Shown here piece by piece: positions 4,070 to 38,486 of a stretch of DNA of 64,000 nt. Each line of letters begins with the position of its first letter. Positions within the stretch are counted from its first letter, which is position 1. A model generated the notes under the pieces. That model was not told the DNA's origin. It saw nothing but the letters and a program-made list of their open reading frames with translations, and made no database searches. Origin of the DNA: Thalia democratica (taxonomy: Eukaryota); NCBI GenBank assembly GCA_965202585.1, contig OZ241827.1, positions 70,680,001 to 70,744,000 on the forward strand, read 5' to 3'. Made by a program: the position numbers and the translations under genes.

Positions 4070-4185
4070 TTGCAACGTCTGCGTTTGCCATAATTGCCCC
4101 GAGAATAAAGCAAAACTCTGTGCTCTTGAGTACTTTTGAAATGTGGCAACGTTGTTTTTTTTTTATTGCTGACATTTCGGCTCAA
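4070..4185 (+). other. Conserved post-stop (3' UTR) element of A1
   Basis: TGCCATAATTGCCCCGAGAA...AAATGTGGCAAC...GCTGACATTTCGGCTC aligns with the other three A loci. CGTTTGCCA (4082-4090) can pair with TGGCAACG (4144-4151). Confidence 0.6.
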
Positions 4186-6983
4186 ATGAAAATTCTAAAT
4201 TTTCTTAAATCTGTAAATATTAATTAATATTTTTATCAAAAGACTTTTTTATAAACACATTTATTTTTCCCGTTCAATTGATTACTTATACATTTAATAC
4301 TCGAATTTTAAATACATTTCTACTACTTAGGTTTTAGCAAAACATCATCTTCTATTATCTGTTTTACAGCTGTATAAGCTTTTAAATACTATTTATTCTA
4401 TATCATGTAACTTATATTTTAATTTTTTCGATTTTTGTAAGTTATTTTTTTGTAAATATTAAACAGTCACTTTTTATATATGTTCAGATATTTCTATTAA
4501 ATACATTTGACAGTAAGCTAAAAATTTTAAGAAAAGTTTGTGTTAGCAAAAACTAGATCTTTAAATACATATGCCAACTTTAAATTACTACCTTGATTTT
4601 ATACATTCGAGTATAAATAAGATTTTTAAACTTTGAAACAACTATTTACTTTCGTTTTAGTCAAAAAAAAAAACTTTGGGTCTTAAATAATTCAAACTTT
4701 TAAAGCAATTTAGTTAGAACATCACTATTTAACTGCTTTTTTTTATATTTGTTATTCAACCTTCTGAGAACTTAATTGTAATTAGATATAAAACGTTTAT
4801 GCAGAGACTAAAAGTTTTATTGGAAAAAGTAGTAAATACTCACAATTCCTTTGTTTAAAGCTTTAATACATAAAATTAATAATTGCACGCTTAAGCATAA
4901 TGTTAGTAAAGTTAATCTAGTTTTATTTAATAATTTCATAGAAATACATTAATTAGTTCTATACTCATTACATTCAAAAGTTGATGATATACAGACTTGC
5001 TTTGGTTATACGGTGAAGCAAAAAAAATAAAGTAAAAATAAAAACCTTTGATTCAAATTAGTATTAAAAAAAAACCTTACAAAAACACACTTAAACACTA
5101 CTAAAAATAATTACTGCTAATTTAACTCGGATTTTAGTTTTGTAAATCTTAATTTCATGTTTAATATTTCCGAACTTGTTTAAAAATATTAAGTTCAATG
5201 TTTGAAACGTTTTATACAATATAATTACACAAAACTAATCTATTTACATAATCACAGTAGCTATTTTTTAATTAAATGTAAACCACACTTTATTAGTTTC
5301 TTTTTGATAATCGAATTTAAAATAGTTAAACGTGTAAATATCTATATAGCTTTTTAAAGTAACAAAAGAATATTGTGGTAGAACTTAATAGGTAACACTA
5401 AGAAAGAAATAATGCTTAGTTTAATCTTCAATAGTTTTACAAAACATAAGAAAAATAAAATACTTCAAATGTTGTTCGATTTTGGTAGGAAATGTATCTA
5501 AATTCTGTGAGAATTAAGGCTTATTAAACTTTTTTAAAAACAATGTACCAATTGACTAAACAAGTTTCAAAACGTTTTATTTCAAAATCATAGAATATTT
5601 TCTAAAGTACTGTGTTAAGCAACATATTCAGAGACATTTTTTACTTTTAGTTTTTAAGAATATTTAAAGTAAACAGCCTAAGTATGAACAACTAACAACA
5701 ATTAAAGTACAATTTTTGAGTTGTTTCTTTATATTAAAAGTTCAAAGCTATACACTATTAATAGAATATAATTATTTTCATTTTACTTTTTTTTTCTAAA
5801 ATTACCTTTTAAACGTTAAGCTTGCAGTGATCTTCTAATTCTAAAAACCTATTAAACACCAAGATACATTTTTAATCTCCTTAAGCAATCAGTTTTAAAA
5901 AAAAAATTCTTTTCATAATTTTTATACGTCGATTGTGGTACAAAACATCCCTTATTTTGCCTTAAAATCTTAACAAGAAAAAAAACAGTTGAGAAAAAAC
6001 AGTCTTTTAAACTAACATACTAATATAAGCATGAACTTAAGAAGATATAGTTTAATAGATTTTAGTATTAGTTTGTGTTCAATCACTGTATAAAGGGATA
6101 TTAAAGTTCACAAAACTAATTTAGACTGTGGCATTTACGACAATTGGTTCAAATATAATTTAGCTACTAAATACATATATGCATGTACTTGTTTATTAAT
6201 TGTTACAAAATTTATTACACATTCAAAGGCTATACTCCAAGTATTTTGCTTTTATAAACTTATTGAAACAACTAATTGACTTTTTCGATCTTTAAATTAA
6301 ATTTTTAGATCTTTAAATCATGGGCGTTCTAAATTTTGTTTCCGACAGAATAGATGCGAAATCTAGTTTAACAGCAAATTTTTTTATTTCATGTTATTGT
6401 TCTCAACTTTAAAATTGTGTTTTATTGTGAATTAATTTAGTTTTTTATTAAATTGATTTTCTTATAGTAGATTATCTAACTAGATAACAACTTTACATCT
6501 ATTTTTAAACGCTGTTGTTAGTAATCTGAAATTTAGTATACTGGGTATGCCTTAAAATGTGGTTAAATAATGTTAATATTATCATTATAGTAAACAGTGG
6601 TTTTAACTATGAGCTTAGTAGTACATTATTTTATAACAAACACACTATTTGATAACACTAGAACAAAAACAGAATGTTTAAATTAAACAACTACTTTGTA
6701 CTCTAACTTTTGACTCTGTTGTCCAGCAAAATAATTCTATATATTAATTTTGACTTTTACAATTAAACTTTAAACGACTCAGTTATGTGATTTAAACTAC
6801 TTTTTAACGCTGTATTTCTAACAGTCAGTAAATAATGTCTTCATTAGTATAAGTATCAAACTAAATTAGGTTTTTTAAATGTTTGACTTTATATGAGATT
6901 TTTTTGTCACTAATGTTTATTTTGTCTTTAATATTATTTTTTATTCCTACTGATACAGCAAATATTTCTAAATATATTTACAA

Positions 6984-8182
6984 CGTAAAATGTTATTGAC
7001 TTTTTATTATGTTTTGTTTGAATAAATAAAACAAAATCAAAGAAATCAAATGATAGATCAAAATTGCTGTTTTTTTATTTCTAAAACTTATGATCTTTAT
7101 TGACGAATCGTTTTAATTTTTTTGTTAAAGTTTTAATCAAAAGATTAAAAAGCTTTAGTCATGTATAAAGCTTATCGATATTAAGAAACTAGTATTTGTT
7201 AAATTTTTTGTTTAAAATATCTATAAAATACCTTATTAACATATATTAAAGTATTTTTTGATTAAGGTAAAACAGCCTTTTAATTGTCTTTTTATTTAAT
7301 TTTTACATTTTTATTACTTCTTATTTTAAATTACAAATTTATAGAAGTTTAGACCAAAAATAGTTTTGGGTCGATATAAAGAGCTTTCTTTGAAATATTG
7401 ACTCAGCTGCACATATTAAAAATGCTTTTTTAATTTCTATTTTTATTTTCGAAATCATGTGGTTGAAGTTATTTATATTTATATAAAAAGTTACTTATAA
7501 AAAAAGTTAATCAGATTATACCACATGCTTTTTTTCAGTATAAATACAGGCTGACTAAAAATCTTATTATAAAATATAGATGCGTAAAATGTTATTGACT
7601 TTTTATTATGTTTTGTTTGAATAAATAAAACAAAATCAAAGAAATCAAATGATAGATCAAAATTGCTGTTTTTTTATTTCAAAAACTTATGATCTTTATT
7701 GACGAATCGTTTTAATTTTTTTGTTAAAGTTTTAATCAAAAGATTAAAAAGCTTTAGTCATGTATAAAGCTTATCGATATTAAGAAACTAGTATTTGTTA
7801 AATTTTTTGTTTAAAATATCTATAAAATACCTTATTAACATATATTAAAGTAATTTTTGATTAAGGTAAAACAGCCTTTTAATTGTCTTTTTATTTAATT
7901 TTTACATTTTTATTACTTCTTATTTTAAATTACAAATTTATAGAAGTTTAGACCAAAAATAGTTTTGGGTCGATATAAAGAGCTTTCTTTGAAATATTGA
8001 CTCAGCTGCACATATTAAAAATGCTTTTTTAATTTCTATTTTTATTTTCGAAATCATGTGGTTGAAGTTATTTATATTTATATAAAAAGTTACTTATAAA
8101 AAAAATTAATCAGATTATACCACATGCTTTTTTTCAGTATAAATACAGGCTGACTAAAAATCTTATTATAAAATATAGATGC
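6984..8182 (+). repeat. Near-identical 599-bp tandem duplication covering the A2 promoter module
   Basis: The unit starting CGTAAAATGTTATTGAC occurs at 6984 and 7583. I saw only about three differences between the copies. Confidence 0.95.
8003..8145 (+). promoter_or_regulatory. Core promoter of A2 (proximal copy; distal copy 7404-7546)
   Basis: CAGCTG 8003, CATGTG 8055, CACATG 8121, TATAAATA 8138. Confidence 0.6.
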
Positions 8183-8872
8183 TATTGTTATTGTTTAACA
8201 ACAGATTTTTTTTCTTTATTGAGAAGTATGTTTTTTTCATATACACTTAATAAAAATATATATTTAAAAAAGTATAAATTTTTGAGTTTTGAGAATAAGT
8301 AAAAGTTTGGACATTATTTTCACATATAATAACATAAAAATTTAAATTATTTAATGGTATTAAAAAGTTAAAAACTATTGATATAGGGAGAAATTATACA
8401 GCATAGCCAGTTTGCACTAACTTTAATTATACTTTAGAGTTTATAAAATTTTATTAAAAACATAAAACAAACATGTCGTTTACAAATTTGATTTTTTTGT
8501 TATAGCATTTATCATGATTACTAAACTTTTAGTTTCTAAAGTTTAATAAAGTTACTAAAGTACTTTGCTTTAGTCGTCAGTTTTATTCAATTATACCGTT
8601 TGAAAATTTGTTTGTAAGAGTACTATATATTTTTTATTATTGTATTTTTCACGATAGAAGTAAAACAGTGACAAACAATAAAAAATTAAGTTTATTTACT
8701 CGTAAATATTTCTAAACAACTTTTTGTAGTTTTTCAATATAAAAACCAATTAAAAGTTAGAATTTGAATATTTAAACTGTTTAGAAAAACTGTTTTTAAT
8801 TGGTGTCATTGTCAAATCAATTCTTATCTTATTAACAGCAATATTTAGAAACTTTTTTTTACTGAAACTAAA

Positions 8873-9043
8873 ATGGCCGGACAAGCATGCAAACCAGATG
8901 AGCCTGGTACGAATATTGTACCGTACCTAGCTACGACATTCACAAATTTAATATCACCCCCGCCAACTCCGCCGCCAACTCCGCCACCAACTTTCCCGCC
9001 AACTCCCCCGCCAAGTCCCCAACCAAGTCCAAAGAAAAAATAA
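8873..9043 (+). CDS. Pro-rich microprotein A2, 56 aa: MAGQACKPDEPGTNIVPYLATTFTNLISPPPTPPPTPPPTFPPTPPPSPQPSPKKK
   Basis: Acceptor ATTAACAG ending 8838; ACTGAAACTAAAATG start context identical to A1; shared KPD.P...IVPY and TPPP repeats; stop aligned with the A1 stop. Confidence 0.75.
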   Translation: MAGQACKPDEPGTNIVPYLATTFTNLISPPPTPPPTPPPTFPPTPPPSPQPSPKKK

Positions 9044-9055
9044 CCGCAGCATCCA

Positions 9056-9143
9056 CAGTTGCCATAATTGCCTCGAGAATGGAGCAACTATGTTCTATGA
9101 TCGTGGTCATGCATGAGAGAACTCTCAAAATGTGGCAACACTG
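9056..9143 (+). other. Conserved post-stop element of A2 (predicted stem-loop)
   Basis: CAG-TTGCCA (9056-9064) is complementary to TGGCAA-CA-CTG (9133-9143); inner TTGC-CTC-GAGAAT-GGA-GCAA. Confidence 0.6.
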
Positions 9144-11921
9144 ATTTTGACAGCTCAGCTTAAACTAGCAAGTATAAATTTTCCTACGCGTGTAAATATT
9201 AGTAAAAAATTTGTATCACGATGCTTTAATTTTGAGTGACTTTCCGATCACTTATATATTTTTTTCGTGAGTAAATAGCAATTAAGAATTCTATTACTTT
9301 GGGTTCAGCAAAATATCAGCATTAATAATCGATTCAACAATTATAATGTTTTTCTGTTAAAGCTTGTAAATACTATTCATTATGTTTAATGTAATAAAGC
9401 TTGAAATTATAACGTTTCAATAAAGTTTTTTTTGTAAAAACTAAAATAATTATTTTAAGTTTTTTTTAACATTTTTTTTTCTTATATGCTTTTAATAGTT
9501 AGATAATATTTTTAAGATTAAATGTGTGTAAAAGAAAAGCTAAATATTAAAGTATTAGTACATCCAATTATAACTAAAATACTCAGACTTAAAAGCTGTT
9601 AATTTCTTTGGTTTTGGACAAAAAACCAAACCTTGGTCTTAATTTAGGCGTCCAACTAGTTTAAACTTTTAAAGTATTTGAGTAAGAATATTTGTGTTTT
9701 TTTTTTGTTAATTAATCATTCTTCTGGGAACGTTGTTGTAATTAGATTTTAACGCCAAGTTATATCTAATTACTAATCTCTGCAGAGACTAAAAATGCTT
9801 TTAGAAAAAGTAGTAAACATTTATTCCTTTCTTTAAGGCTTAAATAAATAATAATTACTAATTGCACGCTAAGCATATTTTTAGTTTCGTAAATTTAATT
9901 TCATTAAATAGTTTGTTAGAAAAAAAGAAATAAATTCTATATTCATTACATTCAAAAGTTGTTTTTATACAGACTTGCTTTGGTTATACGGTGAAGCGAA
10001 ACAAATAAAGTAAAAATATTTGATTGTAATTGATATAATAAAAGGTACAATAAAAAAATCACAAAAGTACATTTAAATACCATAAAAACTGATTAATGCT
10101 AATTTAATTTGGGTTTTAGTGTTGTAAATTTTAATATCATGTTCAATATTTATAATTTTGTTTAAAATTGTTAAGTTCAATGTTTGAAACGCTTTATTTA
10201 TATTTATATTTTGGTTAACTAATCTATTCATAATTTAACAGTTGCTATTTAATAAAAAAAATTAATCCAAATTTTGTTCATTCCTCTTAATACTCGAAAA
10301 TAAAACTTTTAAACTTGTAAAAATCTAAACAGCTTTTTAAAGCAACAAAATAATATTGTGCTTCAACTTGATAAGTAACAACAATAAAGAAACAACGCTT
10401 AATTGAACCTTTAATAAACCACAAAATTTTAAAAATGTGAAACGTTTGCAAGTGTAGTTCAATTTAGGTAAATGTATCTAAGGTTTTGTAAGAATTTAAC
10501 CTTGTTAAATTTTTTAAAAACATTATACTCATTGAATCAATAAAGTTCAAAGCATTTTATTTTCATCATTATAAAGTATTTTCTAATGAACTGTAGTTAG
10601 CAACATATTCAGAGAGGTTGTATGATTTTATTTATTCTTTAAGTTAAAAGCCTCTAAAATATGAACAACAACTATTTTGATTACTATTCTTTATCCTGAC
10701 AGTTTAAAGCTATACACTGTTATTAGAATAAAGTAATTTTTGCAATAACATTTTCTAAAGTTACCTTTTTTAACATAAAGCTGGCAGTGATATGCTGACT
10801 TTAATAACTAGTAAACACAAATATACATTTTTATCTCACTAACCTACAAGTTTAATGAAGAAATAGTTTCTTTTCACAGTTTTCACGGTCAATTATGGTG
10901 CAAACCATGACCTTATTTGCTTTAAAATATTAAAGTTATTTAAAAAAAAAACAGTCGTTCAAACTACTAAGTTAATAATCTAACTTAAGATTTAGTTTCA
11001 TATTTTTTTATATTTGTTAGTGTTCAATTACTGTCTAAAAATAGTTTAAAGTTCAGAAAACTAACTTAAAGTGGGGCGGGCATTAACGACAATTACTTCA
11101 AAGTTTACAATCCTTAGACGTACATATTTATTGGACAAACATTAAAATACTTTATGTCAAAATATATATTCCAAGTTATTTATAAAAAAAATAAACAGAT
11201 TTGCAAAAACAATTGAGCTTTATTTTTTAAGTCACGAACGATCAAAATTTTGTTGTACGGAATAAATGTAGAATGTTAGTAATTTTTTGTTAAGTTTTTT
11301 TTTTCATTTTGAAAACCTTGTTTTGTTTTCAAATAATTTGACTTTCAAGGAAACTTTTTTTTCTTGTGATAATTTAGGATACATACTAAAACATTTTTTT
11401 ATAAATATACATAACTTTAAGATTAAAATATATTTAACTAGTTTTTTTAAGCTAACTTTAAATTAACTTCGTTGAAATAACTCACATCGGTATTATATTA
11501 AAAAGTATCTTTAAATAAAATCAAACACACCAAGTTTTAATCATAAGTTTATTTGAATTTCTATTTTAAAATACCATGCTAAATAAAGTTTTTTATAAAA
11601 TAAATAACAGTTATACATAAAACAACTTTAAAATTTAAAAATAAATACTATATACTTTATCATTTAATATAAATAAATTATTAAAAAACTCAAGTTGTCA
11701 ACTTTATTTAAAAGCATATTTCTTTAAGTCATTTTTTCACAGAGTATTATTGTTTTTAAAATTTTAGTATAAAATTAAAAATGTTATTCGCAGCATACTA
11801 TTTTTTTAACATAATTTACTTTTTTTTACAAAAAGTTACAGCACTAAAAGCTTGTATTTAAAGATTATAAATAATTAAATTAAAAACAAATGTGTTTACA
11901 CTGAAACAAGTCTTTCGTTTC

Positions 11922-16700: not shown

Positions 16701-17879
16701 TAGATTACGTTGATCAAGTTAGAATAATTGTAGTACAGCTTGGTAAAGCAACTAAAAAAGTAAGTGTATGAAACACGTTTTATAAACATAAAAAACTCTT
16801 AAGCATTAAATATAACATAAAAATTTTGCCAAAACTAAAACTTAATTGCAGTTAGTATGTAGTTATTGTTTTTAAAAGCTTTTATTGTCTAAGTTCTATG
16901 CCATTTAACTATCACATAACAACTTTTGTTTAACTTTGATTTGACACTTGACGTTTGGTTCATAGATTCTGCTTGAGTCTATAACTTAAAAGTTTTAACT
17001 AAAATAAGTGGAATGAATAAAAAGCTTTTGATATAGTGAGTTTAAAACTTTTTCTTTTGTTTTGATACAATAATTTAGTTTAAAAGTAAATTATCATTAG
17101 AAGAAAAAATTTAGTGCACAACTAGAAAATATTTTTCAATTTTAACGAAACCAAAAACAAGTACTTTCTACTTTTTTTTATAAACTTTTTTACGATTTGT
17201 GAAAGTTTTATATTGTATTGTAAACTTTGTGATAATTACGTTCTCAGACAATTGAGATAATAAAATTTATAATAATTTCTATCAATTTATATATGAAAAA
17301 TTAATTTAAAGTCAATTCTTTCCAATGTTTTACCATTTTGCTAGTTTTATTTTAACGAAGATTTTTTTATTTAACTAAACCCAAAGAAATTATTAATTCG
17401 ACATTTAAAAGCTTTTGGATATATTCGACCGAATTTTATTTAGGTTTATCTTTATTTAGGTTTAGGTTTATTTTAGGTAAGCATTTCGTATACATTTAAT
17501 TTTGTTTTTGAACTACTAGCTCACGATTGTTATAAGTAAGTACTAAAATAAGAAATTAATGTATTAATATCTGTATAAAAAAAAAAGTTACAGAAAAGAG
17601 TAGTTGTTACAATAATATGAAGCTACATAAAAGTTTTATCTTTAAGCCTTGATAGCATGATAACTAATAGCAATAATTTAAATAATATTTACAAGCTTCA
17701 TAAGTAACAACTTATAATCAAGCATTAAAGTACTTATTATGCAATAGTCAAAGGGGCAAAATGTTAATTTCTATTTACAAACGAAAAAGATATAAGTCGA
17801 TTTACTAAGCTATAAACTAACTAGAAAAGCAATACAAGTATTAAGTGTTATTTAAATACAAAAATGAATGTAGAACTAA

Positions 17880-17990
17880 ATGTTCGAGCTGAAATATCAG
17901 CAAAAAACAAAAACAGTGTTGCCATTTTTAAGAGGTGTATAATCAAAGTCATAGAGTTCTGCTCCGTTCTTGGGAAATTATGGAAATTTA
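17880..17990 (-). other. Conserved post-stop element of A3
   Basis: Minus strand TTCCATAATTTCCCAAGAACGGAGCAGAACTCTATGAC...AAAAATGGCAACACTG...GCTGATATTTCAGCTC aligns with the A1, A2 and A4 elements. Confidence 0.6.
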
Positions 17991-18012
17991 TGGACATATT
18001 TCAGTGCTGCAG

Positions 18013-20519: not shown

Positions 20520-20621
20520 ATGGAAATGGCAAACTGTGTACTGTACACTAAATCTAATGGTGATGAAGACTTTAAAGTATCGATTAAAGACAAAACCGAT
20601 CAAACAAAAAACAACGAATAA
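20520..20621 (+). CDS. Microprotein B1, 33 aa (31 aa from the conserved second ATG at 20526): MEMANCVLYTKSNGDEDFKVSIKDKTDQTKNNE
   Basis: Candidate acceptor AACAG about 23 nt upstream; aligns at protein level with the reconstructed B2 ORF; 5' leader and downstream region are homologous between the two loci. Confidence 0.6.
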   Translation: MEMANCVLYTKSNGDEDFKVSIKDKTDQTKNNE

Positions 20622-20713
20622 CCACTATCCACTTGTGACTTCACATTAAAATAACCACTGTCTACTTGTGACGTCACATTCAAATAACAACCATCAACTC
20701 ATGACATCATATT
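20619..20713 (+). repeat. Three 33-bp tandem repeats beginning at the B1 stop codon
   Basis: TAACCACTATCCACTTGTGACTTCACATTAAAA at 20619, TAACCACTGTCTACTTGTGACGTCACATTCAAA at 20652, diverged third copy at 20685. Homologous repeats at 26720 and 26753. Confidence 0.8.
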
Positions 20714-21142
20714 TCTGAACTTCTACTTATTGTACATACATAGACTATTGATTTTTACTTTTTTTACTGAGTTTAAAAAAAAAATTCAAGTAAATGCTAG
20801 CTGAAATATTTTTAATAACACTAAAGAGCTATAAGCAAGCAAACACTACTTTTAAATTTTATTTTTAACAAAGATAAAACCACTTTCTAATCTAAAGCAT
20901 TTTCTTTCGATTTAAATAAATCATTATATATGTATATTAAAATATATATATTAAAACTTCATAGCTTTTATTAATATGATAAACATAATTTTTTGAAATA
21001 TTTTTTTCTCACCAAATTTAGTAATTAAATTGAGTGAAGCTACTTTTCAAAGGAAAATAGTGTAAATAAACATATATTAAAACAATTTCAATATAAAATA
21101 TTAAGTTATATATTTTAAAATGTGTTTTATTTGTATTTAAGG

Positions 21143-21466: not shown

Positions 21467-24343
21467 ATTTAAGGTAACCACTTAAATTCCCAAGTACTTA
21501 TACCTAAAGTGGTTGTCTTTAGTTTATAACAACCCATAAAATGAAACATCTCAAATCAAAATATATTTATGTTTACACTTATGAACTGAAGTTTAATATG
21601 ATATTTTTATACTCAAGGAATTGAAGTTAGCTTTGAAAAGTTATGTTGTATTTAATATTAGAGATGTTCAATTTTCATAAAGTATTTATTAAACAACTGC
21701 TACTCTTTAACACATAATTGATGCAATAAAGTTTTTTCCTATCTTTTAAAGCAAAAGTAGACATACATTTTGTAAGCAGACTTTACTCTTAATAAGAAAC
21801 ACAAAGTTAAAAAAAATAACATTGTTTCAAGAAACTAAGTTTTTATTTATACTTGGAGCTTAATAAGCTAAAATTTGTATTAAAATTTCAGTTACTTATT
21901 AAAGTTCAACTACTAAATGTTTTTTATTTGCAAATTTTATATTTTAAATTTGTGATTTTCAGAAAGAGTGTGCTATTTTAAAAGTACAAAAATATATAAT
22001 AACTGGTGTATAGCTATAAAACTTAATAATAAAGATTAAGAAATTGATTAAAAGTTATAAATATAATGATTATCAATTGCTTTATTTACTAATTTTAGAG
22101 TATTTTAGTTAAAAAAGTTGGTTTAACAATAAAAGTAAGCAAATTGTTTAATAGATAAATAAATAATTAGTTTAAAACTATTTGTCTATGTTTAATAAAA
22201 AGCCAATAAGGCATTTACAACAAATGTATGTTCGTAAAGTTTTAAAATGATTTTAATTGATATATGCCCACAAAACTTACATGAAGTTGTATTAAGTTTA
22301 TAACAAATTCACACTAAAAATACACTGAAAATACAAATAAGTACAAGTTTGCCGAACGATGTTATCTTTTAAAACATCGCTTACAAATTTTTTTTTAGTT
22401 TTTTATGTTGTTTAGCTTATAAGTTCGAATCCGAGTATTAGATTAAAAAGCTGATTTAGTTTTTATGACAAACATGTGCGGTAATTTGTTCAGCACAGTT
22501 AGATGAGATAGTTTTATGATAACAAAAGAATTAAAAAGTTTTAGAAATAGAAATTAATACAAATAATCACTTTAAAATACTAAGATTATCTAAATCACAT
22601 ATAAAAAGGGAGAACTACTTGTTTTTTTCACTCGGTGATGTTTTAGTATTAGTTTATTATAGTGCTCTCCTACTAGCTACTGTATATACTAACTTTATGG
22701 AACGGGTTTAAAAAGCATAAATATTTTTTAACGCTTTAGACACTTGTTTTAAAATATTTATACAAATGTGTGTACAAAGCTGGTAAGTAAAATATGTTTC
22801 AAATGTTTTAATACCAAGGTTTTACTTTTTCAATTTACATTTGCACAGATTGGATTCTAAAGAACTATGTTGTTTTGTGAAACAGTATAACTAAAGATTG
22901 GTTTTTCGTAGTATATCCGTAGCTTTAATTAGTTCTTTTTCTCTACTTACGAATTTACAGATTTTAAACCTATGTTGCTGTTATGTATTTTCTGATGTGT
23001 TTTTGTGATCATCAAGATAGTATACTAATTTTATCAAGTTAAATAACAAATAAAGCATGTATTTAATTATAGTTAGAAAGGGTATTAATTTTAGAAACTC
23101 TTTGACATGTTTTTATCAAAAATTATTGATAAGCAAACATGATATTTAGATTTTTAATATTTTTTTACAGAAGTTACGATTAATTTTTATTTTAGTAAAT
23201 CTTTTAAAATATATGACATGATTATTTTGTTGATTCTGACTTTTTGTAACAGTTTAAAATTTTTGAATTTGAGTATTAAATAGAAATGATAAAAAACTAC
23301 TTAATATTGATAGCAAACAGCTGATGTTCTTTAATCAATATAACTAGATAAGATTAAAATAAAAGTAAGTAAAGAAAACATGTTTTAAATATTATACTTA
23401 ATATAAACACTTTATTTTGCATGTATTGAATTTTTACTTAAACGTTTGTTAGGACTCATGGTTTATGGCAATTTTACTGAGACTTTATATGTTAATTAAA
23501 CTTTTTTAACTACATTTTATTCATAAACTTACATTAAATACTTTTTATTTAACTTGGTGGTTCCAGTTAAAGTAAATATTAACAACTGTACCATAAGTAG
23601 TAATCTTATAATTTGATCACTTACTTTTGATTTGTTAAATAAAAACTAATGTTTCAAAGTAAACATATCGTAAAACAAACTTTCAAGCGTTAACATAGTA
23701 AATGTTTACAATAACTGAAATCAAGATAAAATCAGCTTATACTTTTATAGTTCATTCTAAGATATGTAGATGTGTTTTATAGTTTTTTATTTAATTATTA
23801 TTGTCTTGTTATATAATAGTTTTAATAATTAAAACATTAACACACTAAATCACTTTATTAGATTAATCTCCTATATGTTTAAAGTAAGTTATTTTTTGGG
23901 TTTTAATTGAACCATTTACAATATTTATTTAAACCTATCAAAGTTTTAAAAATTTAATATTTTTATATGTAAAAAACTAAATATATTAAATTTAATGAAT
24001 TAGGTGATACGAAACTTGGTTAATTATTTTAATATCAAAGTTTTAGTTACATTTGTTTTTATTATATAAATGTTATCTTACATTTTCAAACTATTCGTAA
24101 AAAGTTTTCATAACAATAAAAAACCATCAAAATAATTTTGATGTTTGCTGGTTAATAACTGGATAACCGACACTAAAAGTTTACTTTGTATAAAACATTA
24201 TTTACAAGCATAAACAGTAGCGCAAAACACTATAGAGTTAATCTTTGAAGCATTTATTTTGCTCAAATCTAAGATAAAAATGTTGGTTGATATTTACAAA
24301 TAAATAAAAGTTGAAAAGTGATTGAAAAAGCTGCTATTTTAAG

Positions 24344-24432
24344 TACAATGTTGCCATATTTTAAGATTTCCCAAATTTATAATCATGATCATAGTACTTA
24401 GCTCCATTCTCGGAGCAGTTTTTGCAACTGTA
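24344..24432 (-). other. Conserved post-stop element of A4 (predicted stem-loop)
   Basis: Minus strand TACAG-TTGC pairs with GCAA-CA-TTGTA; perfect inner hairpin GCTCC-GAGAAT-GGAGC. Confidence 0.6.
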
Positions 24433-24444
24433 GATGAATAACAA

Positions 24445-24585
24445 CTAATATTTCACATCTTTCGGCAAATATGGCGGATAAGGCGGAGGTGTACGAGGTT
24501 TTTGAGGCGAACCTGGCAGAGAAGGCCGATCTGGAGGCTTGCAGCTACACTCTGTTTTATCCGGTTCGCCCGTGTATTCGGTCAT
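24445..24585 (-). CDS. Pro-rich microprotein A4, 46 aa: MTEYTGEPDKTECSCKPPDRPSLPGSPQKPRTPPPYPPYLPKDVKY
   Basis: GC-rich island absent from the ORF track; candidate acceptor TTACAAG 18 nt upstream; 5' leader AACACTAAT similar to A3 AACACTGAT; same downstream element and promoter as the other A genes. Confidence 0.72.
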   Translation of the reverse strand: MTEYTGEPDKTECSCKPPDRPSLPGSPQKPRTPPPYPPYLPKDVKY

Positions 24586-25303
24586 CTTGGATTAGTGTTG
24601 AAACTTGTAAATGTTTTTATAAATATCTATGGTGACTTTGTTTTCAAATGTAATCCTTTAAGATGAAGTTTATAATAATACACAAATTTTTATGAGCTGT
24701 TTAAGCTTAACAGTTCATAACTATACTGAAATCAAAACAAAAATGTTTAAAACATATTACTTATAAATTTTAAACTTTGTTTAAAAAAGTTATTTTCAAA
24801 AATAAAAGCTCTAACTTAACGATTAAATTGTTGTTTGAATATCTAAAGGCTCCAGAATATTTTTTTTAATTATCTTTATACAAGACAGTAGAGAAATTCT
24901 AAAATAGTTTTAGTAACTTTAGTAGTTTTAAAAAGCAGAGAATTTTTATTTATTAATAAATATTAAAAATTAAATAAACAAAATTAAACCGTTTCACTAA
25001 ATATTTGTTGTAAAAACAAAAATTATACAAAACTAAAATACACAAAAAAATTGATAATTATATTATGTATTTTTCCCTAATAGAATCAATAGTTTATTAA
25101 TTATTGAATACCATTAAATAGTTTTAATTTGTACATTAAAAAAAATCTTTTTTATTTCTACTTATTCTGAAACATTTTTTTAACTTTATTTTAACGTAAG
25201 TGCTTTTAAAAATAAATACATACTTTTTAAATTCCTAGAAACAGACTTTAGTTGTATAGGCAAATTAACAACTCATTATAATAACATTGTGTCATTTATT
25301 CTT

Positions 25304-28866: not shown

Positions 28867-31800
28867 TCATTTTGATGTTTTGTTGAAGAACTTGTGATTT
28901 AGTAATTCAGATGCTGTTGGTCTTTTTCTCCTTTTACTGAAATAAAGTTATTGCGATAAAAACTTAATACATTTTTAAAATTAAACAGGTCTAAACTTAA
29001 AAAATAAACGTTGTAGAAATTTTTAATTGCTTAAATGTTCAAAAAGATAGAAAATATTGTTTCCATTTAGATGTTATGTGATGGTAACTAAAATTTATTT
29101 CATTTAAAAGTAGTAGAACTGGGTACACAACAATATATATTCTATAAGTTTTGAGTTACTGTCAATTGTTTATTACAATATAAATCAAAAAAATATATGT
29201 AATATTCTAATATTATTAAGTATACCTGTACAAGCTTCTTTTTTGTTAAGCTATAGTAAAACACGTGTAATAGCTTAAAAAATATAGTAATTTCTAGTAA
29301 TTATGGACTTTTTTTCAAATTTTTCTATAGTTTTGATCTTATCAATTAGCCTTACATGAGCTTTTTATGTTCAAACTAAGACTATTTATTCGATGTTGCT
29401 CTTTAAAGATTTTTATAACAATTTAAATCGTCGCAATTTGAAAAGGCATGTAGCCAGTAGAACTACACACAAATATATTATGTAATACACTAATCTTGGT
29501 TAAAATTAAGAACTAATATATAATTGACTGATTGGTTTAGCGCATAACTTTCACAGGTTTTTAATGTCCCTAACATAGTTTAAAGCTTGTTTTGGTAAAA
29601 TATTCAATAGAATTATAAATAAGGGGAAAAAAAAATTCTAAAATATTGAAAAAACAACACATTGTATAATACAGGGTTGCTAAGGGTATTTGAAAAATCC
29701 AGATTTTGAAAATACTAGTTTTTGTCCATTTTTAGTATAAATTTAAATCTAAGGTAACAACTTGTCTTAAAATAGCATAAAAATTTTGAAAAGATACTGT
29801 AATGCTTCTTTTAATATGGTTTATGATAGAAAAATAATTTTAAAAAAACATTATATGTGATAGACTTTTAGCATTTAAGAAAACTTTAAATATTTTACAT
29901 GAAAAAACTGTTTAAAACTCAAGGTTTTTCCAGATTTTAAGTGATTTTAGCTCAAATATACAAGTTTTTCCTTTTTTTTTTTTGAACATTTTCCAAACTC
30001 AAGGTTTTTCAGGTTATTTTTGCCTTAAATTTTTAATTCCAAGCTTTTCAAGGATTCCAGGTTTTTTGACAATCCTGTGTATAAGCAATACATTGTCTTG
30101 TACAAGACCTTAAACTGTATTCAAGTGGTGTACGACTCACGATAACCGAAAAGTTTTTTTGAGCATCAGAACCCTAGAAACTAGGACCAAGTATTTAAAG
30201 CGTTTAATTTTGTCGTTCTATATAACTTACCCACTGATAAACTAACAAATAAAACTTCTTCACTAAATACTCGGTTAAAAGAATTATACTATTTAGTGTT
30301 CTAAAACAAATTCTATTTTTGCAATGAATTAATTTGCTCAAGTTATGTAAAAGCTTGAAGAATGTACAAGTTTAGTGAAATAGGAACTAATAAAAAGTGG
30401 AGGTGCCGGGCATCGATCCCGGTGCCTCGCGCATGCTGGGCGCGCGCTCTGCCATCTGAGCTACACCCCCACACGTTTAAATTGATATTGTGATGTATAA
30501 GTAGTCGTTATAACATTGAGGTGAGGGAATGATTTTGGTGTATGGTCAAGTTTAATTTTCCAGAAGCAAGTGATTGGATAAGTTAACATTAAACTTGTTT
30601 TTTACAATTGAAGAAATTAACTGCTTTATTATGTACCTATGGTGTTAGTACTGTTATCAGAAAGTTGTTTTTATGAAAACTGAAAAATTGATAGATAAAA
30701 CTTGCATTTTCTGCATACTTTGTTTTACTTGAAGCAAGTATTACAAGTCAAAAAGAATTAGAAAATTAATACTACTAAACGTTAAATATAGTTTTACAAA
30801 AACAGTTATTCATAATCTAATAGTATTGAAGTCTTAAACACATAACAACCAATGTTACAGTTTGATCGAAGCAATAGGTTTGTAACTCAGTTGTTAATTT
30901 TTTGTTGAGAATAATTAAAAATACAGATAAAAACTATTTTACTAGCCATAATTAAAAGGAACAACTGCACAATCGAACAACAAGTTTACCTACATTGAAC
31001 AGATTATCAAAAATACAGGTATAAATATAACATATACTAAAAAACTATATGAAGTATAGTGATCTACATACATTTATTTAACAATTGTCAATTTAAGCTA
31101 ACGCCGTTTCACCTAGGAGGTTCTTCAAAGCTTTTTTAAATTGACAAAAAAATAAAATGAACCACACAAATATATAGGTAAAAATACTAACAATTAACAA
31201 CTAACAATTGCAAACACATGTCGACCAATTCAATCGCTTCATCCGAGAAAGTACCGGGCAACTTGGGCATCGGTTGTTTGTTTCCAATGTGAAACATGGC
31301 GCTGATTGGTTTTTTTTCGCTCAGAGGGGGTTTCCCTGTTGCCATCTCGAATATCGTGCACCCAACTGACCTGCAGAGTTGAGCGAATTAAAAAAGTGTA
31401 TATTTCGTATAACATTATTATATTAAGTTAGTTTTGAATAAGAGTACAGCTTTACAAGTGCTAGATAGACAAATAACTAGCTAAACTATTGTTAGAACAA
31501 AAACTGGATACTTTTATTCTAGCTTAATATTTGTTTATTATTATGAATATTGCTGTTCGCTTACGAGGTTTAACCTTTTATAGCTGATCATGCACAAATA
31601 TTTTAATATATTTTCAGGTGTAAACTTCAACAACTTTTATATTAATTAAACCAATGCGTGCAGGCTTTTCTTGAGATTGGTTTATGTTTTAATACTCAGA
31701 AAATACATTTTTCGTTGTAAGTAATTTAAATTTTATTTGGAAAACTAACTTTCTCAAACACCTTGAATTCGCATTCAATATCAAGAAACACATACTTACC

Positions 31801-34800
31801 AGTACTTTATTAATCAAACAAAACAAACAAATCTTAACGGATTTCTTCAGCTTTGCAAACAGTACAACTTTATAAAGTTTAGTTCGGTTTTGTGTAAACA
31901 AAAGATAATGTTCGTGACACCAACTTTATAATAAAATCAATAAACTTATCTATACAAACAAAAATGAAAATAAATTATTGTATCTATACAAACGGGTAGC
32001 TGTCAGAATTGCACGAGGGGAAAAAATTGCGCGAAGATACTTTTGAACGAGGGGATAAAACTACAAGAAGATAAAGTTGCACGAAGACGCTTTTACACGA
32101 GCAGGAAATTTTTGACAATTTAAATTATGGAAACAATATAAAATTTTATCAAAACAAAGTTTAATACCAGTTATAGTTTTTAAACAATCCGTTTTTAACT
32201 TTGCATAACTGACTTTGTTAAGTATTTTAAAGTTAATATGCACTCTTTATATGCTAAAAAAGTTGGATTTTATACAAATTTTAGGTAGGAATTATTTTTT
32301 TTTAAATACTATATACATCTTTAGATTAATTCAGCTTAACCACATTTAGTGTCAATTATATTTTAATACTTTTTCAATGTTTTTCTATGTATGTTAAGTA
32401 ATGTGAACATCGTATTACGCTATTAATGTTATTATACGAAAGTTACACATTCTATATGAGGATGTAAAATTTTTACTTTTATTTTGATAATTTGAAGTGA
32501 AATTTATATTAGTTATAATAGCACAACTAAAACTTTTAAATTATTTATTGTCGTAATTCTTTTGTTAATCTTATTACCTATTGGATAAACATGTTCTTTG
32601 AAAAGTTAATTTAACTACACTAATTACTATGATTTTAATCAATAAATCATTCTTTTAAAGTCTGAGTTTTGCTGAGCTAAAAAACCCAAATTAGCAAATA
32701 ACTTGTTAAAGAAAAGATTTTCATAAAATTTCAAAATATTTTAACTCAAGTATTCTGAGCATTTGTGAAATATCTTATTCAATAATTTTACTGAAATCTT
32801 TCACCATCATAATCTTATTAATTCAACCTTCTGGTAAATTTTTAAGTACATTACATGATAACTAGTTTAAAATAGTTTCTAAGCTGTGACAAGGAAAAAT
32901 TCTAACTGTCACTATCTAAATTTTCACGTAACCAAAATATATTTCAAATAAACTAATACCAAAAAAACAAACCAAATATCAGCTTTAGGTATCAGCTATA
33001 GGTTAATGCTTGATGTAACATCAAACTAAAATAACGTATATCTAAGGTAAAAATTAAAAAAACATTCAAGTCTACAAGCAAATGTAGAACAGAACACATT
33101 CTAATATTAATTTGCTTATAACAACTGAAAACTCACCAAATATCAGCTTTGGGTCCATGCTTGCTGTCTTTAATAACTTCAGGTGCCATCCAGTAAGGAG
33201 TTCCTATTGAAGCCAAACCGCTCACAACAAATGGCGATTCTTTGAGAAGGTCTCCCCTAATCGTACTGTACGAGTTGTTTGCGTTTGTTTGTATGAGCTT
33301 GGCGCATCCGAAATCAATCAGCTTCACTGTGCCGTCGGGTAGTAGCATCACGTTGTTGCTTTTGATGTCTCTGCAAGTAAAACTGGTGTTGATATTAATT
33401 TAAGCAATGTTTTTGGATGAGTGTAGAATTATGTGTGGATTGCAATTTTGAAAGTAAATTACATTCCGTCTAGAAGGAGCATCACACTGTTGTTTTTGAT
33501 GTCTCTGTAAATGAAAAATGTGTATTGCAGACTTAGGTTTAATTTAGATAAAGCTCGCAGTAATGGTATGTTTATCAATCAAACATCTGGTAACATTGTA
33601 TTTCTAGCATTATACATGGTTTCCACTCTTTGAGACAAAAACTATCCAGAGTCACCATTAACTGTCCCGTGTGATCTTTACATGTCCTGAGCCATCCTGA
33701 GTTTTAAGAACCAATAAGATAAATTTTCAGATTTATTAGAAAAACTGCAACATTATCTCTGTTTGCAGTCAAGAGTTAGCTGTAAGACTAAAAAACATAA
33801 ATAATCATTCAAAATCCAAAAAAAAATACTCCAATTTTGCTTTTAAACAGATTTTATTTTCATTTTTCAAATTCAAAAAATTATACAGCACATACAACAA
33901 ACTTGTTGTAAACCTAGCCTACCATCTAGAAAAAGTTGCTCAACCCTAATCTAACTTTTAAAGGCTAGATTATGTTGGCTAATAAGTATGGTGTAGTCCT
34001 CTTAAAAAGCTTCAGTTAAAACTAATTATTTTATTGTATTAAATATACTTTACTTCTGTTTATGTACGAAAAAGTATACATTTATATTCAGTTTATATTT
34101 TAAGCTTCAGGGGTAGAATAATTTACTATACTAGAGTTTTTAAAGGTTTGTTGATTAGATTGAGATAAGGAGTTAAAAACTATAATTAAAATGAATATTT
34201 TTAAGTATGACAGTGTGGAAAAAATGTTTCTACAAATACTTAAAACAAGCTGTACAGAGTGGTTGTATTTAATTTTGCACTAATCTCAAATACTTTTACA
34301 TTTAACTAATATTTTATATTTTAATTTTTTTCACATAAATTTTATAAAATAAAAGACTAAATTTTATTATCTTTACGACTGACAATATCAAGCTTTTTTT
34401 TATCTCGTGTGCTAACTGAATAGTCTTTATACTATGCAAACAATCAAGTCTTTACATGTTTATTATTTGATTTATTTATTGATTTATTACATTAGTTTAT
34501 CACCACAAATATTACTTGAACAATATGTATTTTATCTGACGTGCTAATGACTTTGATAGTATTTACAACTTATCATTTTATGTAAATAATCAAGTCTTCA
34601 CTTGTTTACTATTTGATTAAATGTTACACTTTATTTGTTAACCACTTGATATTAAGTAACTTTGTTCTATTTATTTGTTTACATAAAGTCAAACGTACAG
34701 TAATATATTTGCAATTTATTTTTAAGTTTAAAAGAAAAAGTATTATTTTATAATCTTATAGATTTATTCGGAAAACTAGAAGCTAAAGTTAATAAAACAG

Positions 34801-37800
34801 AACTACTCTATAATTTAAAACTATAAATTTAAGTATGTTTTATTTAAATTTTTTTTTTCTGTATTACAAATTTATTTATTAATTATAGTTGGAAATACTT
34901 AAAATTATGATGATAGTTTTACATCTATAATAACAAAACTTTCTTCTGTAATATATTTTAGGTACACAGTTACTAAAGCTCATAAAATATTACTAGTCTA
35001 AACTTTAGCAATAAACTAAAAAATAAGACTTACTAGTAATAGTTTTTAAAAAAGTAGTACAGTTTTTTGTGCTTTAGGTTTATCTTATCAAACATGAAAT
35101 TAAATCAAACTTTATTTTACTGATTTTAAAACTATTACACCTTTATTTCAATAACAATGTAAAGTATTTATGATTGAAATGCTACTAAATAAAAAATAGT
35201 TTATAAACAAACAACACAAAATTCATTATATAAATGAAGTGATCATAGCAGAATTTTTTTGAAAAAATTTTTAATATGTTCTTAAGCAGCTTCAAAAGCT
35301 TTTTCTTCAACTAAGTCTGCTTAAGGTAAGTGGTGTGCATTTGAAGAATTTAAACTTTACTTACTTGAATAAAATAATCTCAAAGATTATTCTATTTAAA
35401 TTAATAATTTCAGTAGGGTCTTTTGTGTAATAACTTCCATTGAAACTAAGTGGTGTGTTCTTACTCATACACAGGGTAGTAAAAATAATGTTTATACAGA
35501 GAAAAATTTTTATCAGTTTGAAAAGACTAGTGCATTTAAAAATTAGTAGCTGGGGATAGATATCGATCTAAAAAGCACATATTATGAACTGCTTCCTTAT
35601 AAAAAACAATCATATATCAAACTAACAAAATAAGTTATAAAAAACTTGTAGAAAAAATATTTTCAATTATGGTCATAAAAATGTTTCATTTTAGTTTATT
35701 AAAAAACTCCTTATAGTACAAGATATTGTAATATTAGAAACAACATTTCTAATAACTTTAAGTAAATTGCATTAAACACTAAGAAGCACATAAAATTTTG
35801 CTAAGTTTTTTACAACTCCAAGAAAATGTGCCATAAAAAATTTATATATAATTTCTTTTAATGGTAAATTTTAACACAGAGATTATAATCTAAAAAAAAA
35901 TTGTTATATAAAAATGAACTTAAAATATATACTTCAAGATTTGGAGTAAGAGCCAATTTTAATTTTTGTAAAAAAAAAAACTTTGTACCCCTTTTTTGCT
36001 TAAAGTAAAAACCTTTTTAGTTTATTAGCTTAATTATTAACAATATACCTTGAATCTTTACTATAAAAAAAACAAAGTACCTGTGAATAACTTTTTTGGA
36101 ATGTATATATTTGACACCATTCAGTATTTGTTTTGAATACTTTTTGAACACTTTTTGAGGCAGGGGGCCATAAGTTTCAAGTATTTTGTATATGGAACCA
36201 CCACTTAGAAATTCCATGTAGATTTTCACCACATTTTTGACAAGATCAGTTCCAATAAAACTGCAAAAACATGAAGTAGTTGTGTTAACTGCTCGTAAAG
36301 ACTCAAATTATAAATCATGCACAAAAATACTTCATATTGAATACAGTACTGATTTTAAGCTTAAAAAAAATTTAACTTCAAAAATAGTATTTCAAAAACC
36401 TTAAAACTTTTTTAGCCAGAAATTCAAAAGTTGCTGTTTTTAACCCTAATGCACATATAAACCTGTAAGGAAGCTAAAGGGTTTTCTAAACATCGATATC
36501 AACTTAAAAGTCAACTTTAATACTAGAAAAAAAACAGCTTACCAAGTTTATCAATATGTATAGATATTTGTAGCAAAGTCTAATTTTAGTAAGTCAACTT
36601 GGTAAATGAACCAGGGCTTTTAATGTCACTCGCTAAAACAAGCATTCTTTTTACCTGACAACATTAGTGTGTTGCATGTTCTTCAGTATGTCAACTTCCC
36701 TCTGTAGTTTTTTGTACTGATAAATAGCTTTGTTTCTATCAACTAGTGTGAGTTTTACTTCTTTCACTGCTATCAGTTCACCTTCACTTGTCATTCCTTG
36801 CCATACCTTCAAAGTAAAAACTAATTAAAAATAACTAAAATTGTGAACTACTTTAATTAACGACTAACAACCCTTTTTTAAGGAGGTGTAATTAAAATCA
36901 TTATAAAAATTTTTATGTTGAAGTTTATTTTTCTCAATTTAAAAATTAGTGTTGTCAATTAATACTGATGTTGTAAAAAAAGTTTAGGTTTTAAACTGTA
37001 TTTTATTTTTCATATATGAAGTGTATTACATTACTTGAATACCAATAGACTCACAATCTAATTTACAATAAAATATTTCAAAACCTTTCCAAATGCACCT
37101 TTTCCAATTAGAGGTCCCTTTTTCAATTTTAAATAAAGTGAAAGGTCTTCATTAGGTGTAGTTTCTACTTCTAAACAATAAAATTTTACATTAAAATAGA
37201 CATTAAACATTTTATCACTTTTCCATTAAGTTGATTCTAAATGTTTTATTCTATTCTTTGAGTAATAAGTTAATTAATAATATCATCCTTTTTTTACAGA
37301 CTTAAATGTGTTTAAAATAAATTTAAAAAAAAAAGCTTTAACATATAACAAAAGATTTTCATGAAACTTTTAACTAAAGTCTGGAAAGTTAAAAACATAA
37401 ATTGTGAGCTATCTATTTAGAATAATAAAAAAAACATAAACCTTCATCAGTGGATGACCAGACACTGGGTTCTTCAGCATCAAAATTTTTTTGAAAAGAT
37501 TCTCCTTGAGCTGTCTCAATTTCATTAGCATTATTATTTGTTTTTGATGCAGCTTTCTGGTTTAACTCATCAGGATCACTTTTTCTGTCTGCACTTTTAT
37601 CTTTTTCTACATTCTTATTGCTTTTAACTGTCGTGCTTTTGTTATTTTGTACGTCCTTGCTTATTTGGTTAGTTATAGCATCGGAAATCATTTTTTCAGG
37701 TTCAATTGCATCTTTACTATCTTCTGAAATATCCAAGAGTTTATCTCCAGATTGTTCACTATCAACATTTTCAGAGCCATTCCCATTTTTATCAGTAAGC

Positions 37801-38486
37801 TTTACAACAGAGTCTTTATCCTCTGTTATGTCTTCATTTTCAGGAATTTTTTCAGAACTACTATACCTAGAAACAGTAGGACTGTGGGAACTAGTGTTTT
37901 CATGTAAAACTTTCTCAATCAATTTTTCATTTCTTTGGCTTGGTTTTTCTATTCTTATACTACCGAGCTTTTTATTGTGAGCATCTGATACTGAGACTGT
38001 TTTTTGCTTTGCTTTGGGATATTCATTGTTGCCAATGATTGGAAGAGAAATTTGTTTTTTCATTAATTTTTTTTGAGCTTTCACCTTAGAAGAACTCTGT
38101 TGCACTGAGCTGCTATTAAAACTGGTCAGCACAAACTGCTTGTCATTTTTAAGCGATTCTTTTTGAACTGTTTTGCTAACTTGCGGTTTGTCTTGTATTA
38201 CTTTATCATTCACTATGCTGTAAGTGATGTCCAGTGCATTGTTCAGATACGTTTTAGAAGGGTATACTTTGTTGCCAGTATTGTTCTTTGCTTTTTCTTT
38301 GGATGTTAAAGTAGTTTTTTCTTTAGATATTTTTTCAGAATATACATCTTGTATATAACTAGGAACAGAGGTCTGCCTGCTTAGGGGCAGAGGATGTTTT
38401 TGTACAATTTTGTTGTTCAAAACAACGCTTCCAGTGATGTTCAGAGCACTTTCCAAATGGTTTTTCTTTTTGTTTCTTTTGGACAT
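28867..38486 (-). CDS. MAP3K19: MAP3K19/YSK4-like Ser/Thr kinase, paralog a, 643 aa (exons 37442-38486, 37085-37170, 36655-36806, 36081-36260, 33137-33370, 31206-31370, 28867-28936)
   Basis: Seven GT-AG exons join in frame (1932 nt). Motifs [64 protein letters not shown]; long low-complexity N-terminus with a C-terminal kinase domain as in MAP3K19. Orthology judged from recalled motifs only. Confidence 0.85.
29672..30077. mobile_element. hAT-like MITE in intron 6 of MAP3K19a
   Basis: Imperfect TIRs CAGGGTTGCTAA / TTGACAATCCTG; internal CAAGGTTTTT(C)CAG repeats; approximate TSD TGTATAA(T/G). Confidence 0.6.
30392..30396 (-). terminator. Pol III oligo-T terminator of the tRNA
   Basis: TTTTT on the minus strand, 1 nt after the tRNA 3' end. 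Confidence 0.7.
30398..30470 (-). tRNA. tRNA-Ala, anticodon AGC, with atypical C32-C33
   Basis: GGGGGTG TA GCTC AGATGGCA GAGC G CGCGC CCAGCAT GCGCG AGGCA CCGGG ATCGATG CCCGG CACCTCC A: complete 73-nt cloverleaf, G3:U70 alanine identity pair, A/B boxes, T5 terminator. Confidence 0.9.
31994..32110. mobile_element. One-ended fragment related to the MULE-like MITE at 55860
   Basis: Starts GGGTAGCTGTCAGAATTGCAC (compare GGGAACAGGTCAAATATGCAC) followed by TTGCACG-type repeats. No second end found. Confidence 0.4.
32973..33016 (-). pseudogene. Relic copy of the 3' end of kinase exon 5 with a GT donor
   Basis: Minus strand CCTAAAGCTGATATTTG|GTTTG versus real exon CCCAAAGCTGATATTTG|GTGAG, preceded by a second partial copy CATCAAGCATTAACCTATAGCTGATA. 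Confidence 0.55.
33459..33504 (-). pseudogene. Relic or poison copy of the 5' end of kinase exon 5 with an intact acceptor
   Basis: TTACAG|A GAC ATC AAA AAC AAC AGT GTG ATG CTC CTT CTA GAC GGA ATG TAA, same phase as the real exon 134 bp downstream. Confidence 0.6.

Follow-up and report, generated by a model that had tools for sequence, protein, structure and literature searches.

A block of 85-100 nt directly behind the stop codon of four small genes of Thalia democratica is conserved among old paralogues, and sequence comparison makes it somewhat probable, in our judgement, that this block is a non-coding cis-regulatory module of linear motifs, carried by the 3′ UTRs of a microprotein family that is specific to this lineage. 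A 3′ UTR location appears the most likely one for it. The lean of the preliminary description of this DNA towards a UTR element is supported, because constraint is found at the nucleotide level and none at the protein level.

A lineage-specific family of proline-rich microproteins

The window, that is, the whole stretch of 64,000 nt that was analysed, contains no N over its 64 kb and has a G+C content of 22-25% throughout. Four small G+C-rich ORFs, A1 to A4, stand out against this AT-rich background:

3920-4069, plus strand: A1 ORF, 49 codons and TAG
8873-9043, plus strand: A2 ORF, 56 codons and TAA
18013-18141, minus strand: A3 ORF, 42 codons and TAG
24445-24585, minus strand: A4 ORF, 46 codons and TAG (24447-24445), a proline-rich microprotein

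A1 and A2 sit in two units of a tandem duplication of about 5 kb. When the four ORFs are aligned, their ATG codons coincide in a similar context and the ORFs run to the same aligned end point; since the stop stands at one aligned place in all four copies, it is ancestral. A Pfam search of the A1-A4 ORFs matched no family, exact look-ups of all four ORFs found none on record, and the sole protein found by word searches was P0001, encoded on a 707-nt ENA metagenome contig (L012) which is an allele or a very close orthologue of A4. The comparison of the A4 ORF with L012 gave a pN/pS of 0.31 in frame against 2.3-2.5 in the other two frames, and because of this difference we take the proline-rich ORF to be real coding sequence; the same comparison served as the positive control for the coding test on the tail, as we call the sequence behind the stop. 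The A genes are a lineage-specific and undescribed family of proline-rich proteins of 42-56 residues.

Beyond the window, a contig of run X3, which bears another organism code, holds a family member whose 3′ arm is ATATGCCAAT, and runs X1 and X2 contain a diverged A2-like contig that lacks one nucleotide at 9091, within the tail. No relatives were found with the antisense-ORF query as bait, and a scan of JGI metagenomes with a degenerate DNA pattern returned 11 matches, all of which were unrelated on inspection. Positions 348-362 of L012 differ from the corresponding 24375-24389 of the window by 6 changes clustered in 12 nt where the tail frame ends, and these changes bring L012 closer to A2 (GAGAG..CTCT); a complex mutation or gene conversion over a short tract could account for the cluster. 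Logan contigs from runs X1 and X2 match the A1 locus:

3753-4164, plus strand: A1 stretch matched by contigs of X1 (0 differences) and X2 (1 difference)

One contig in each of these runs joins 4164 to 9271 and omits 5106 nt, with a shorter side of 26 letters; this joint may come from a haplotype that lacks the duplicated unit of A2 or from collapse of the tandem repeat during assembly. We also observed a conserved block of about 45-60 nt some 510 nt 5′ of the ATG, at 3347-3409 (A1), 8330-8374 (A2) and 25094-25156 (A4), with the core AAAACTATTTAATGGTATTAAAAAGTTAA; A3 aligns poorly there. This upstream block is a possible promoter or first non-coding exon.

Conservation behind the stop codon

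The post-stop block runs from the stop to the end of AAAT-R-TGGCAAC-R-YTG and is present behind each of the four genes:

4070-4154, plus strand: A1 post-stop element, CxxC frame +1, TGGCAAC at 4144-4150
9044-9143, plus strand: A2 post-stop element, CxxC frame +1, GTTGCCA at 9058-9064 and TGGCAAC at 9133-9139
17914-18012, minus strand: A3 post-stop element, tail frame broken, identity to the other copies 0.59-0.64
24346-24444, minus strand: A4 post-stop element, starting right after TAG and closing with AAATATGGCAACATTG, scoring 115 bits with covariance model R1
24346-24361, minus strand: A4 3′ block AAATATGGCAACATTG, starting with the last A of the tail-frame stop, the remainder lying 3′ of that frame

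All six paralogue pairs share 0.59-0.74 of their nucleotides over the block, with z-scores of 3.6-8.6 against shuffled sequences. For the four distant pairs, the ORFs have an identity of only 0.51-0.57 (z 0.9-3.2) and the 150 nt that follow the block a z of about 0-2.7, so that in these pairs the ORF and the following 150 nt are, to judge from the alignments, close to saturation, in contrast to the block. The 64 kb contain exactly four copies of the 16-mer AAATRTGGCAACRYTG, one behind each gene, where 0.29 would be expected by chance; TGGCAAC is invariant in A1-A4 and L012; a covariance model built on the block picks out these four sites and no others in the window; and the G+C content of the block is 31-44% against 22% in its surroundings. 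Length differences within it are few, the one clear case being of 3 nt in A2, to which MAFFT adds a 12-nt gap in A1.

The preliminary description had held that the sequence after the stop is better conserved than the coding region. This is true of the distant pairs, but it does not extend to the short range: A1 and A2 have an identity of 0.64 in the tail, 0.64 in the ORF and 0.74 upstream, while A4 and L012 have 0.88 in the tail (12 differences in 99 nt), 0.94 in the ORF and 0.94 downstream (9 in 150 nt), so that between close relatives the block does not evolve more slowly than its flanks. The conservation of the post-stop block across the old paralogues is nevertheless real.

Such a pattern might be left behind without any present function, if the block were the relic of a coding C-terminus or were kept alike by copy-to-copy correction between paralogues. 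The clustered changes that make L012 resemble A2 are what a conversion tract would produce, and the short-range rate of the tail, no slower than that of its flanks, is what would be expected of a functionless stretch. We regard this explanation as quite improbable, however, given that the ancestral stop stands at the same aligned place in all four copies, that the flanks of the distant pairs are saturated where the block is not, that conversion would hardly stay confined to 100 nt at four loci which span 20 kb and lie on both strands, and that the block keeps its higher G+C content in a setting of 22% G+C. A miniature inverted-repeat element (MITE) was also considered and rejected: the 64 kb hold no copy other than those behind the four genes, a two-sided TA flank is found in A4 only, and the depth of the A1 contig is not repeat-like.

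Coding potential of the block

A peptide of the CxNCxENGA type had been read through the block in the preliminary description, and the frames given for it were confirmed: the peptide lies in frame +1 in A1 (22 codons) and A2 (23 codons), it is in frame 0 in A4 for 27 codons up to the TAA at 24363-24361, and its frame is broken in A3, where both Cys codons are TTC and a 1-nt deletion and an in-frame TGA are present. The accompanying statement that the copies differ at third codon positions did not hold. In a gap-free 51-nt alignment of A1, A2, A4 and L012, the variable columns were distributed 6/10/7 over codon positions 1/2/3 of the peptide frame, and the pN/pS of that frame (0.73) fell within the range of the other five frames (0.67-1.40). 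Between A4 and L012, the 27-codon extension differs by 2 synonymous and 9 non-synonymous changes, which corresponds to a pN/pS of 0.86. In this small sample there is no signal of purifying selection on the extension as a protein, neither among the paralogues nor between A4 and L012.

That the frame is open is weak evidence, because A1, A2 and A4 each have two of their three sense frames free of stops across the element. A3 has lost the frame, yet it is about as similar to the other copies (0.59-0.64) as A1 is, and the most strongly conserved part of the element, the block that holds TGGCAAC, lies beyond the tail-frame stop in all but its first base. Within the core C-x-N-C-x-E-N-G-A, the x codons hold most of the replacements, the pattern expected of a short constrained peptide, the Cys, Asn and Ala codons have synonymous variants (TGC/TGT, AAT/AAC and GCA/GCT), and the one clear length difference, in A2, is of 3 nt; none of these signs in favour of coding is significant, the sites being few. 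On the preferred reading, the resemblance to a peptide follows from nucleotide conservation where stop codons are scarce.

Two further sets of frames over the element were rejected. A second open frame whose ATG has a favourable context (GAGAATGGAG) runs for 21-22 codons into the TGGCAAC block in A2, A4 and L012; A1 has ATA and A3 has ACG in place of this ATG, the pN/pS is 1.06 and the differences between A4 and L012 are mostly replacements. The antisense ORFs have inconsistent starts, a pN/pS of 1.40 in the codon-aligned antisense frame and no splice signals.

Possible recoding at the stop codon

The CxxC tail could be appended to the proline-rich protein if ribosomes shifted into the +1 frame at the A1 and A2 stops and read through the TAG in A4, a recoding cassette being one of the readings offered in the preliminary description. 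The tail frames are indeed placed as this would need, +1 in A1 and A2 and 0 in A4; AAA-TAA-C of A2 is the commonest +1 site of Euplotes (PMC5011710); and A4 and L012 both retain the TAG, the open 27-codon extension and the same TAA. However, two different mechanisms would be needed inside one young family, the tail has no excess of synonymous changes, a conserved 3′ structure is lacking and A3 is broken. Antizyme frameshifting takes place at UCC-, CCC-, UUU-, GUU- or GCG-UGA, and neither AAG-UAG-U (A1) nor AAA-UAA-C (A2) is among these sites (PMC1874602). The A4 context, UAU-UAG-U, is not of the antizyme type either, and no copy shows a known shift or leaky-stop context. Shifting in Euplotes, for its part, depends on a termination system specific to ciliates (PMC10952039).

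As in an antizyme cassette, the second frame of A1 and A2 is +1 at the stop of the first ORF and is followed by conserved sequence (PMC1874602). Unlike in antizyme, the shift site belongs to none of the antizyme types, the stop is UAG or UAA instead of UGA, the second frame has only 22-23 codons and no antizyme homology, A3 and A4 are in another frame, and the block has no conserved pseudoknot or stem; in a Pfam search the tails gave only sub-threshold chance matches and no antizyme domain. The likeness to Euplotes lies in AAA-TAA standing directly before a +1 open frame in A2 (PMC5011710), but that site is found in one of the four copies, the +1 frame has no coding signature, and the host is an animal with, as far as is known, a standard termination system. 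An in-frame extension that is open in all members, as programmed readthrough would have it, was found only in A4 and L012.

An assembly slip as the cause of the frames was rejected as well. The A1 stop and its +1 offset are not such a slip, since contigs of the two runs X1 and X2 reproduce both exactly. In A2, a run of six A (9035-9040) abuts the stop, and one A fewer would fuse the ORF with the tail; no such fix exists for A1, which the A2 correction cannot explain, and a variant of A2 with a shortened run was not found among the read-contig matches listed. The recoding cassette of the preliminary description is not supported by these comparisons, given frames that differ among the copies, sites that are not of the antizyme kind and a ratio of 2 synonymous to 9 replacement changes between A4 and L012. 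With two mechanisms in a young family, no coding signature and no conserved stimulator, recoding is in our view extremely unlikely.

Possible splicing across the stop codon

The preliminary description had weighed a UTR element against recoding; it had not considered an in-frame GT-AG splice from within the ORF, which would be another route to the tail. In this exitron-type splicing, a donor inside the ORF would be joined to an acceptor before the tail, so that the proline-rich segment and the stop are removed, the first 12-17 codons are fused in frame to the Cys tail and each gene makes two small proteins. Exitrons are reportedly alternatively spliced internal parts of coding exons, as Marquez et al. 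are said to have described in 2015. An enumeration of GT/GC-AG pairs yielded the following candidates:

3970 to 4069, plus strand: A1 candidate splice, donor CC|GTACGT at 3970, acceptor TAG| ending at 4069
8923 to 9049 or 9058, plus strand: A2 candidate splice, donor CC|GTACCT at 8923, acceptor CAG| ending at 9049 or 9058
24550 to 24428, minus strand: A4 candidate splice, donor GA|GTGTAG at 24550, acceptor CAG| ending at 24428

A1, A2, A4 and L012 each allow GT-AG introns of 100-136 nt that keep the phase, with a phase-2 donor in each intact copy; the donor position is shared by A1 and A2, within an identical block of 14 nt; A4 has a good pyrimidine tract (TTGTTATTCATCTACAG) ahead of its acceptor; and the model explains why the tail frame differs from copy to copy relative to the stop. 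However, an in-phase GT is to be expected by chance (about 0.87) among the roughly five GT of each ORF, donors such as GTACCT and GTGTAG are weak, and the donor positions of A1 and A2 are not homologous to that of A4. A1 has no AG at the homologous acceptor, and no pyrimidine tract precedes the AG that would replace it. What would be excised is GC-rich coding sequence, with 0 differences in 81 nt between A4 and L012, while the tail that would be gained has no coding signature and leaves the strongest block outside its frame. The candidates thus resemble exitrons in having phase-compatible GT-AG boundaries inside a GC-rich coding exon, and differ from them in that the piece removed includes the stop codon and opens a downstream frame, and in their weak donors. 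A run search with a 10-kb query, long enough to hide an mRNA of 400 nt, yielded no RNA run. We consider exitron splicing unlikely. The broader proposition that each gene gives two products, a proline-rich microprotein and a form with the CxNCxENGA tail, via an exitron or (less likely) recoding, is hardly more probable and in our opinion still rather doubtful. An 18-nt micro-intron of A4 (TA|GTTGTT...ACAG|T) was also rejected; it is in phase, but it is far under animal intron length and has no counterpart in A1 or A2.

RNA structure

The preliminary description had proposed an outer stem between the two ends of the block and an inner hairpin, which in A4 correspond to the TGGCAAC-holding 3′ block and to these parts:

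24422-24428, minus strand: A4 5′ arm GTTGCAA
24401-24416, minus strand: A4 inner hairpin, GCTCC, loop GAGAAT, GGAGC, with the GAGAATGGAGC core conserved

Complementary arms, GTTGCCA and TGGCAAC, are present, and to this extent the outer stem was correctly seen. The helix is confidently predicted in A2 only, with a probability of 0.85 against 0.18 or less in the other sequences, as was better folding than that of shuffled sequences:

A1: fold z-score against shuffles -0.8; outer-helix probability in a 321-nt context 0.18
A2: fold z-score -2.7; outer-helix probability 0.85
A3: fold z-score +1.5; outer-helix probability 0.00
A4: fold z-score -1.2; outer-helix probability 0.06
L012: fold z-score +0.5; outer-helix probability 0.04

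The 5′ arm reads GTTGCCA in A2, TTTGCCA in A1, GTTGCAA in A4, GTTGTCA in L012 and ATTTCCA in A3. Because the 5′ arm varies in this way and the 3′ arm is the same in all window copies and in L012, the changes in the 7 core arm pairs are all one-sided or pair-breaking. The RNAalifold consensus reached no more than -5.5 kcal/mol, and its covariation term, +1.1, is penalising. Two-sided changes were found in four pairs, a number that 26 of 500 shuffles of these five sequences also reach, and the pair statistics lie within the range of unconstrained related sequences. The inner GCTCC/GGAGC hairpin is stable in A4 alone and is not a feature of the family. A search of Rfam gave no family at the gathering threshold and, at a lax threshold, only matches with E above 2. 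Fold scores, consensus energy, pair counts and helix probabilities give no support to a structured element as it had been described; covariation among the five sequences is not convincing, and a conserved fold is lacking. The GUUGCCA/UGGCAAC complementarity may, according to the folding models, form a closing helix in some copies (A2), one that is not maintained family-wide. As to known structured RNAs, a snoRNA, a miRNA hairpin, a histone stem-loop and a SECIS element were rejected, their defining features being absent from the block.

Linear motifs

The preferred reading of the block as a regulatory module of the 3′ UTR would have it act through short linear blocks, and neither through an encoded peptide nor through an obligatory fold. 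These blocks would be (C)AGTTGCCATAATTGCC, CGAGAATGGAGC, CTATGAT and, as the strongest, TCTYAAAAT-R-TGGCAAC-R-YTG. Further downstream, the sequence behind each gene contains copies of UGUAAAUA, which we take to be a Pumilio-type core, UGUANAUA:

4212-4219, plus strand: Pumilio-type TGTAAATA, 143 nt past the A1 stop; second copy at 4451-4458
9191-9198, plus strand: Pumilio-type TGTAAATA, 148 nt past the A2 stop; second copy at 9365-9372
17772-17779 and 17686-17693, minus strand: Pumilio-type UGUAAAUA behind A3
24291-24298, minus strand: Pumilio-type TGTAAATA, 147 nt past the A4 stop; second copy at 24199-24206

Exactly two copies of UGUAAAUA stand on the sense strand within 400 nt 3′ of every stop of A1-A4, the first of them at +143 (A1), +148 (A2) and +147 (A4). 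This enrichment amounts to 8 sense copies in 1.8 kb against about 0.3 expected, from a density in the window of 25 per 128 kb of strand. The motifs suggest a 3′ UTR that would extend well past the block and be under post-transcriptional control. The block would then be transcribed as part of the mRNA, sequence-specific factors would bind its linear blocks there, and these blocks and the two downstream Pumilio-type UGUAAAUA motifs would jointly set the stability, translation or localisation of the message.

Such an arrangement has much in common with 3′ UTR modules of the Pumilio/Nanos type (UGUANAUA core), in which, as here, the block lies directly behind the stop, short invariant blocks alternate with free sequence, no fold is obligatory and exact UGUAAAUA motifs follow at a conserved distance. 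Unlike in those modules, the main blocks (AAAAT-R-TGGCAAC, GAGAATGGAGC and GTTGCCATAATTGCC) match no motif that can be named and no Rfam family.

The same conserved letters might instead work at the DNA level, as a downstream enhancer or another protein-binding DNA module. Both ends of the block are one motif on opposite strands, GTTGCC(AT) and (AT)GGCAAC, presumably the half-sites that make up an RFX X-box; GGCAAC is invariant, and no conserved fold was seen. An X-box proper (GTNRCC and RGYAAC with a spacing of 0-3 nt) was rejected, since the half-sites are 53-68 nt apart and A1, A3, A4 and L012, four of the five sequences, have a degenerate left one. The place of the block just past the stop, with Pumilio-type motifs behind it, also suits a UTR better, and we think a DNA-level element improbable.

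Other features of the window

Several features of the window are recorded here as observations in their own right. The 300-nt direct repeat and the pair with 599-nt spacing are recent duplications or assembly doublets.

6984-7283 and 7583-7882: tandem pair with 599-nt spacing, 99% identical, inside the A2 unit
20520-20621: small ORF B1, with three tandem units of about 31 nt directly 3′ of its stop (20618-20715), each holding one CRE-like octamer (TGACTTCA, TGACGTCA and TGACATCA)
30397-30470, minus strand: tRNA-Ala (AGC) gene
34383-38275 and 57663-62950: large diverged inverted duplication, arms 71-93% alike
37413-38486, minus strand (357 aa), and 57653-58984, plus strand (443 aa): ORFs of the inverted duplication, with no Pfam match for either
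44398-44697 and 49371-49670: 300-nt direct repeat, 100% identical, 5 kb apart
48313-48644: tandem array of 31-34-nt units (TAAGTTGACATGGAAGATGTGTGGAGACGAA) in about 10 copies, G-rich and with strong GC skew

Significance

The block holds two cautions for scans of this kind: nucleotide conservation in a stretch that is poor in stop codons easily passes for conservation of a peptide, and two complementary 7-mers pass for a stem. The case would be of wider interest only if the minority reading were true, with two proteins made from each tiny gene through an exitron or recoding; the block would then be coding sequence and regulatory signal at once. If our preferred reading of a 3′ UTR module is right, the element is of an ordinary kind, a lineage-specific 3′ UTR control module, in an unusual setting. 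It would indicate tight post-transcriptional regulation of a proline-rich family in a chordate relative that has been little studied, and AAAAT-R-TGGCAAC would offer a defined motif with which to seek the factor that binds it.
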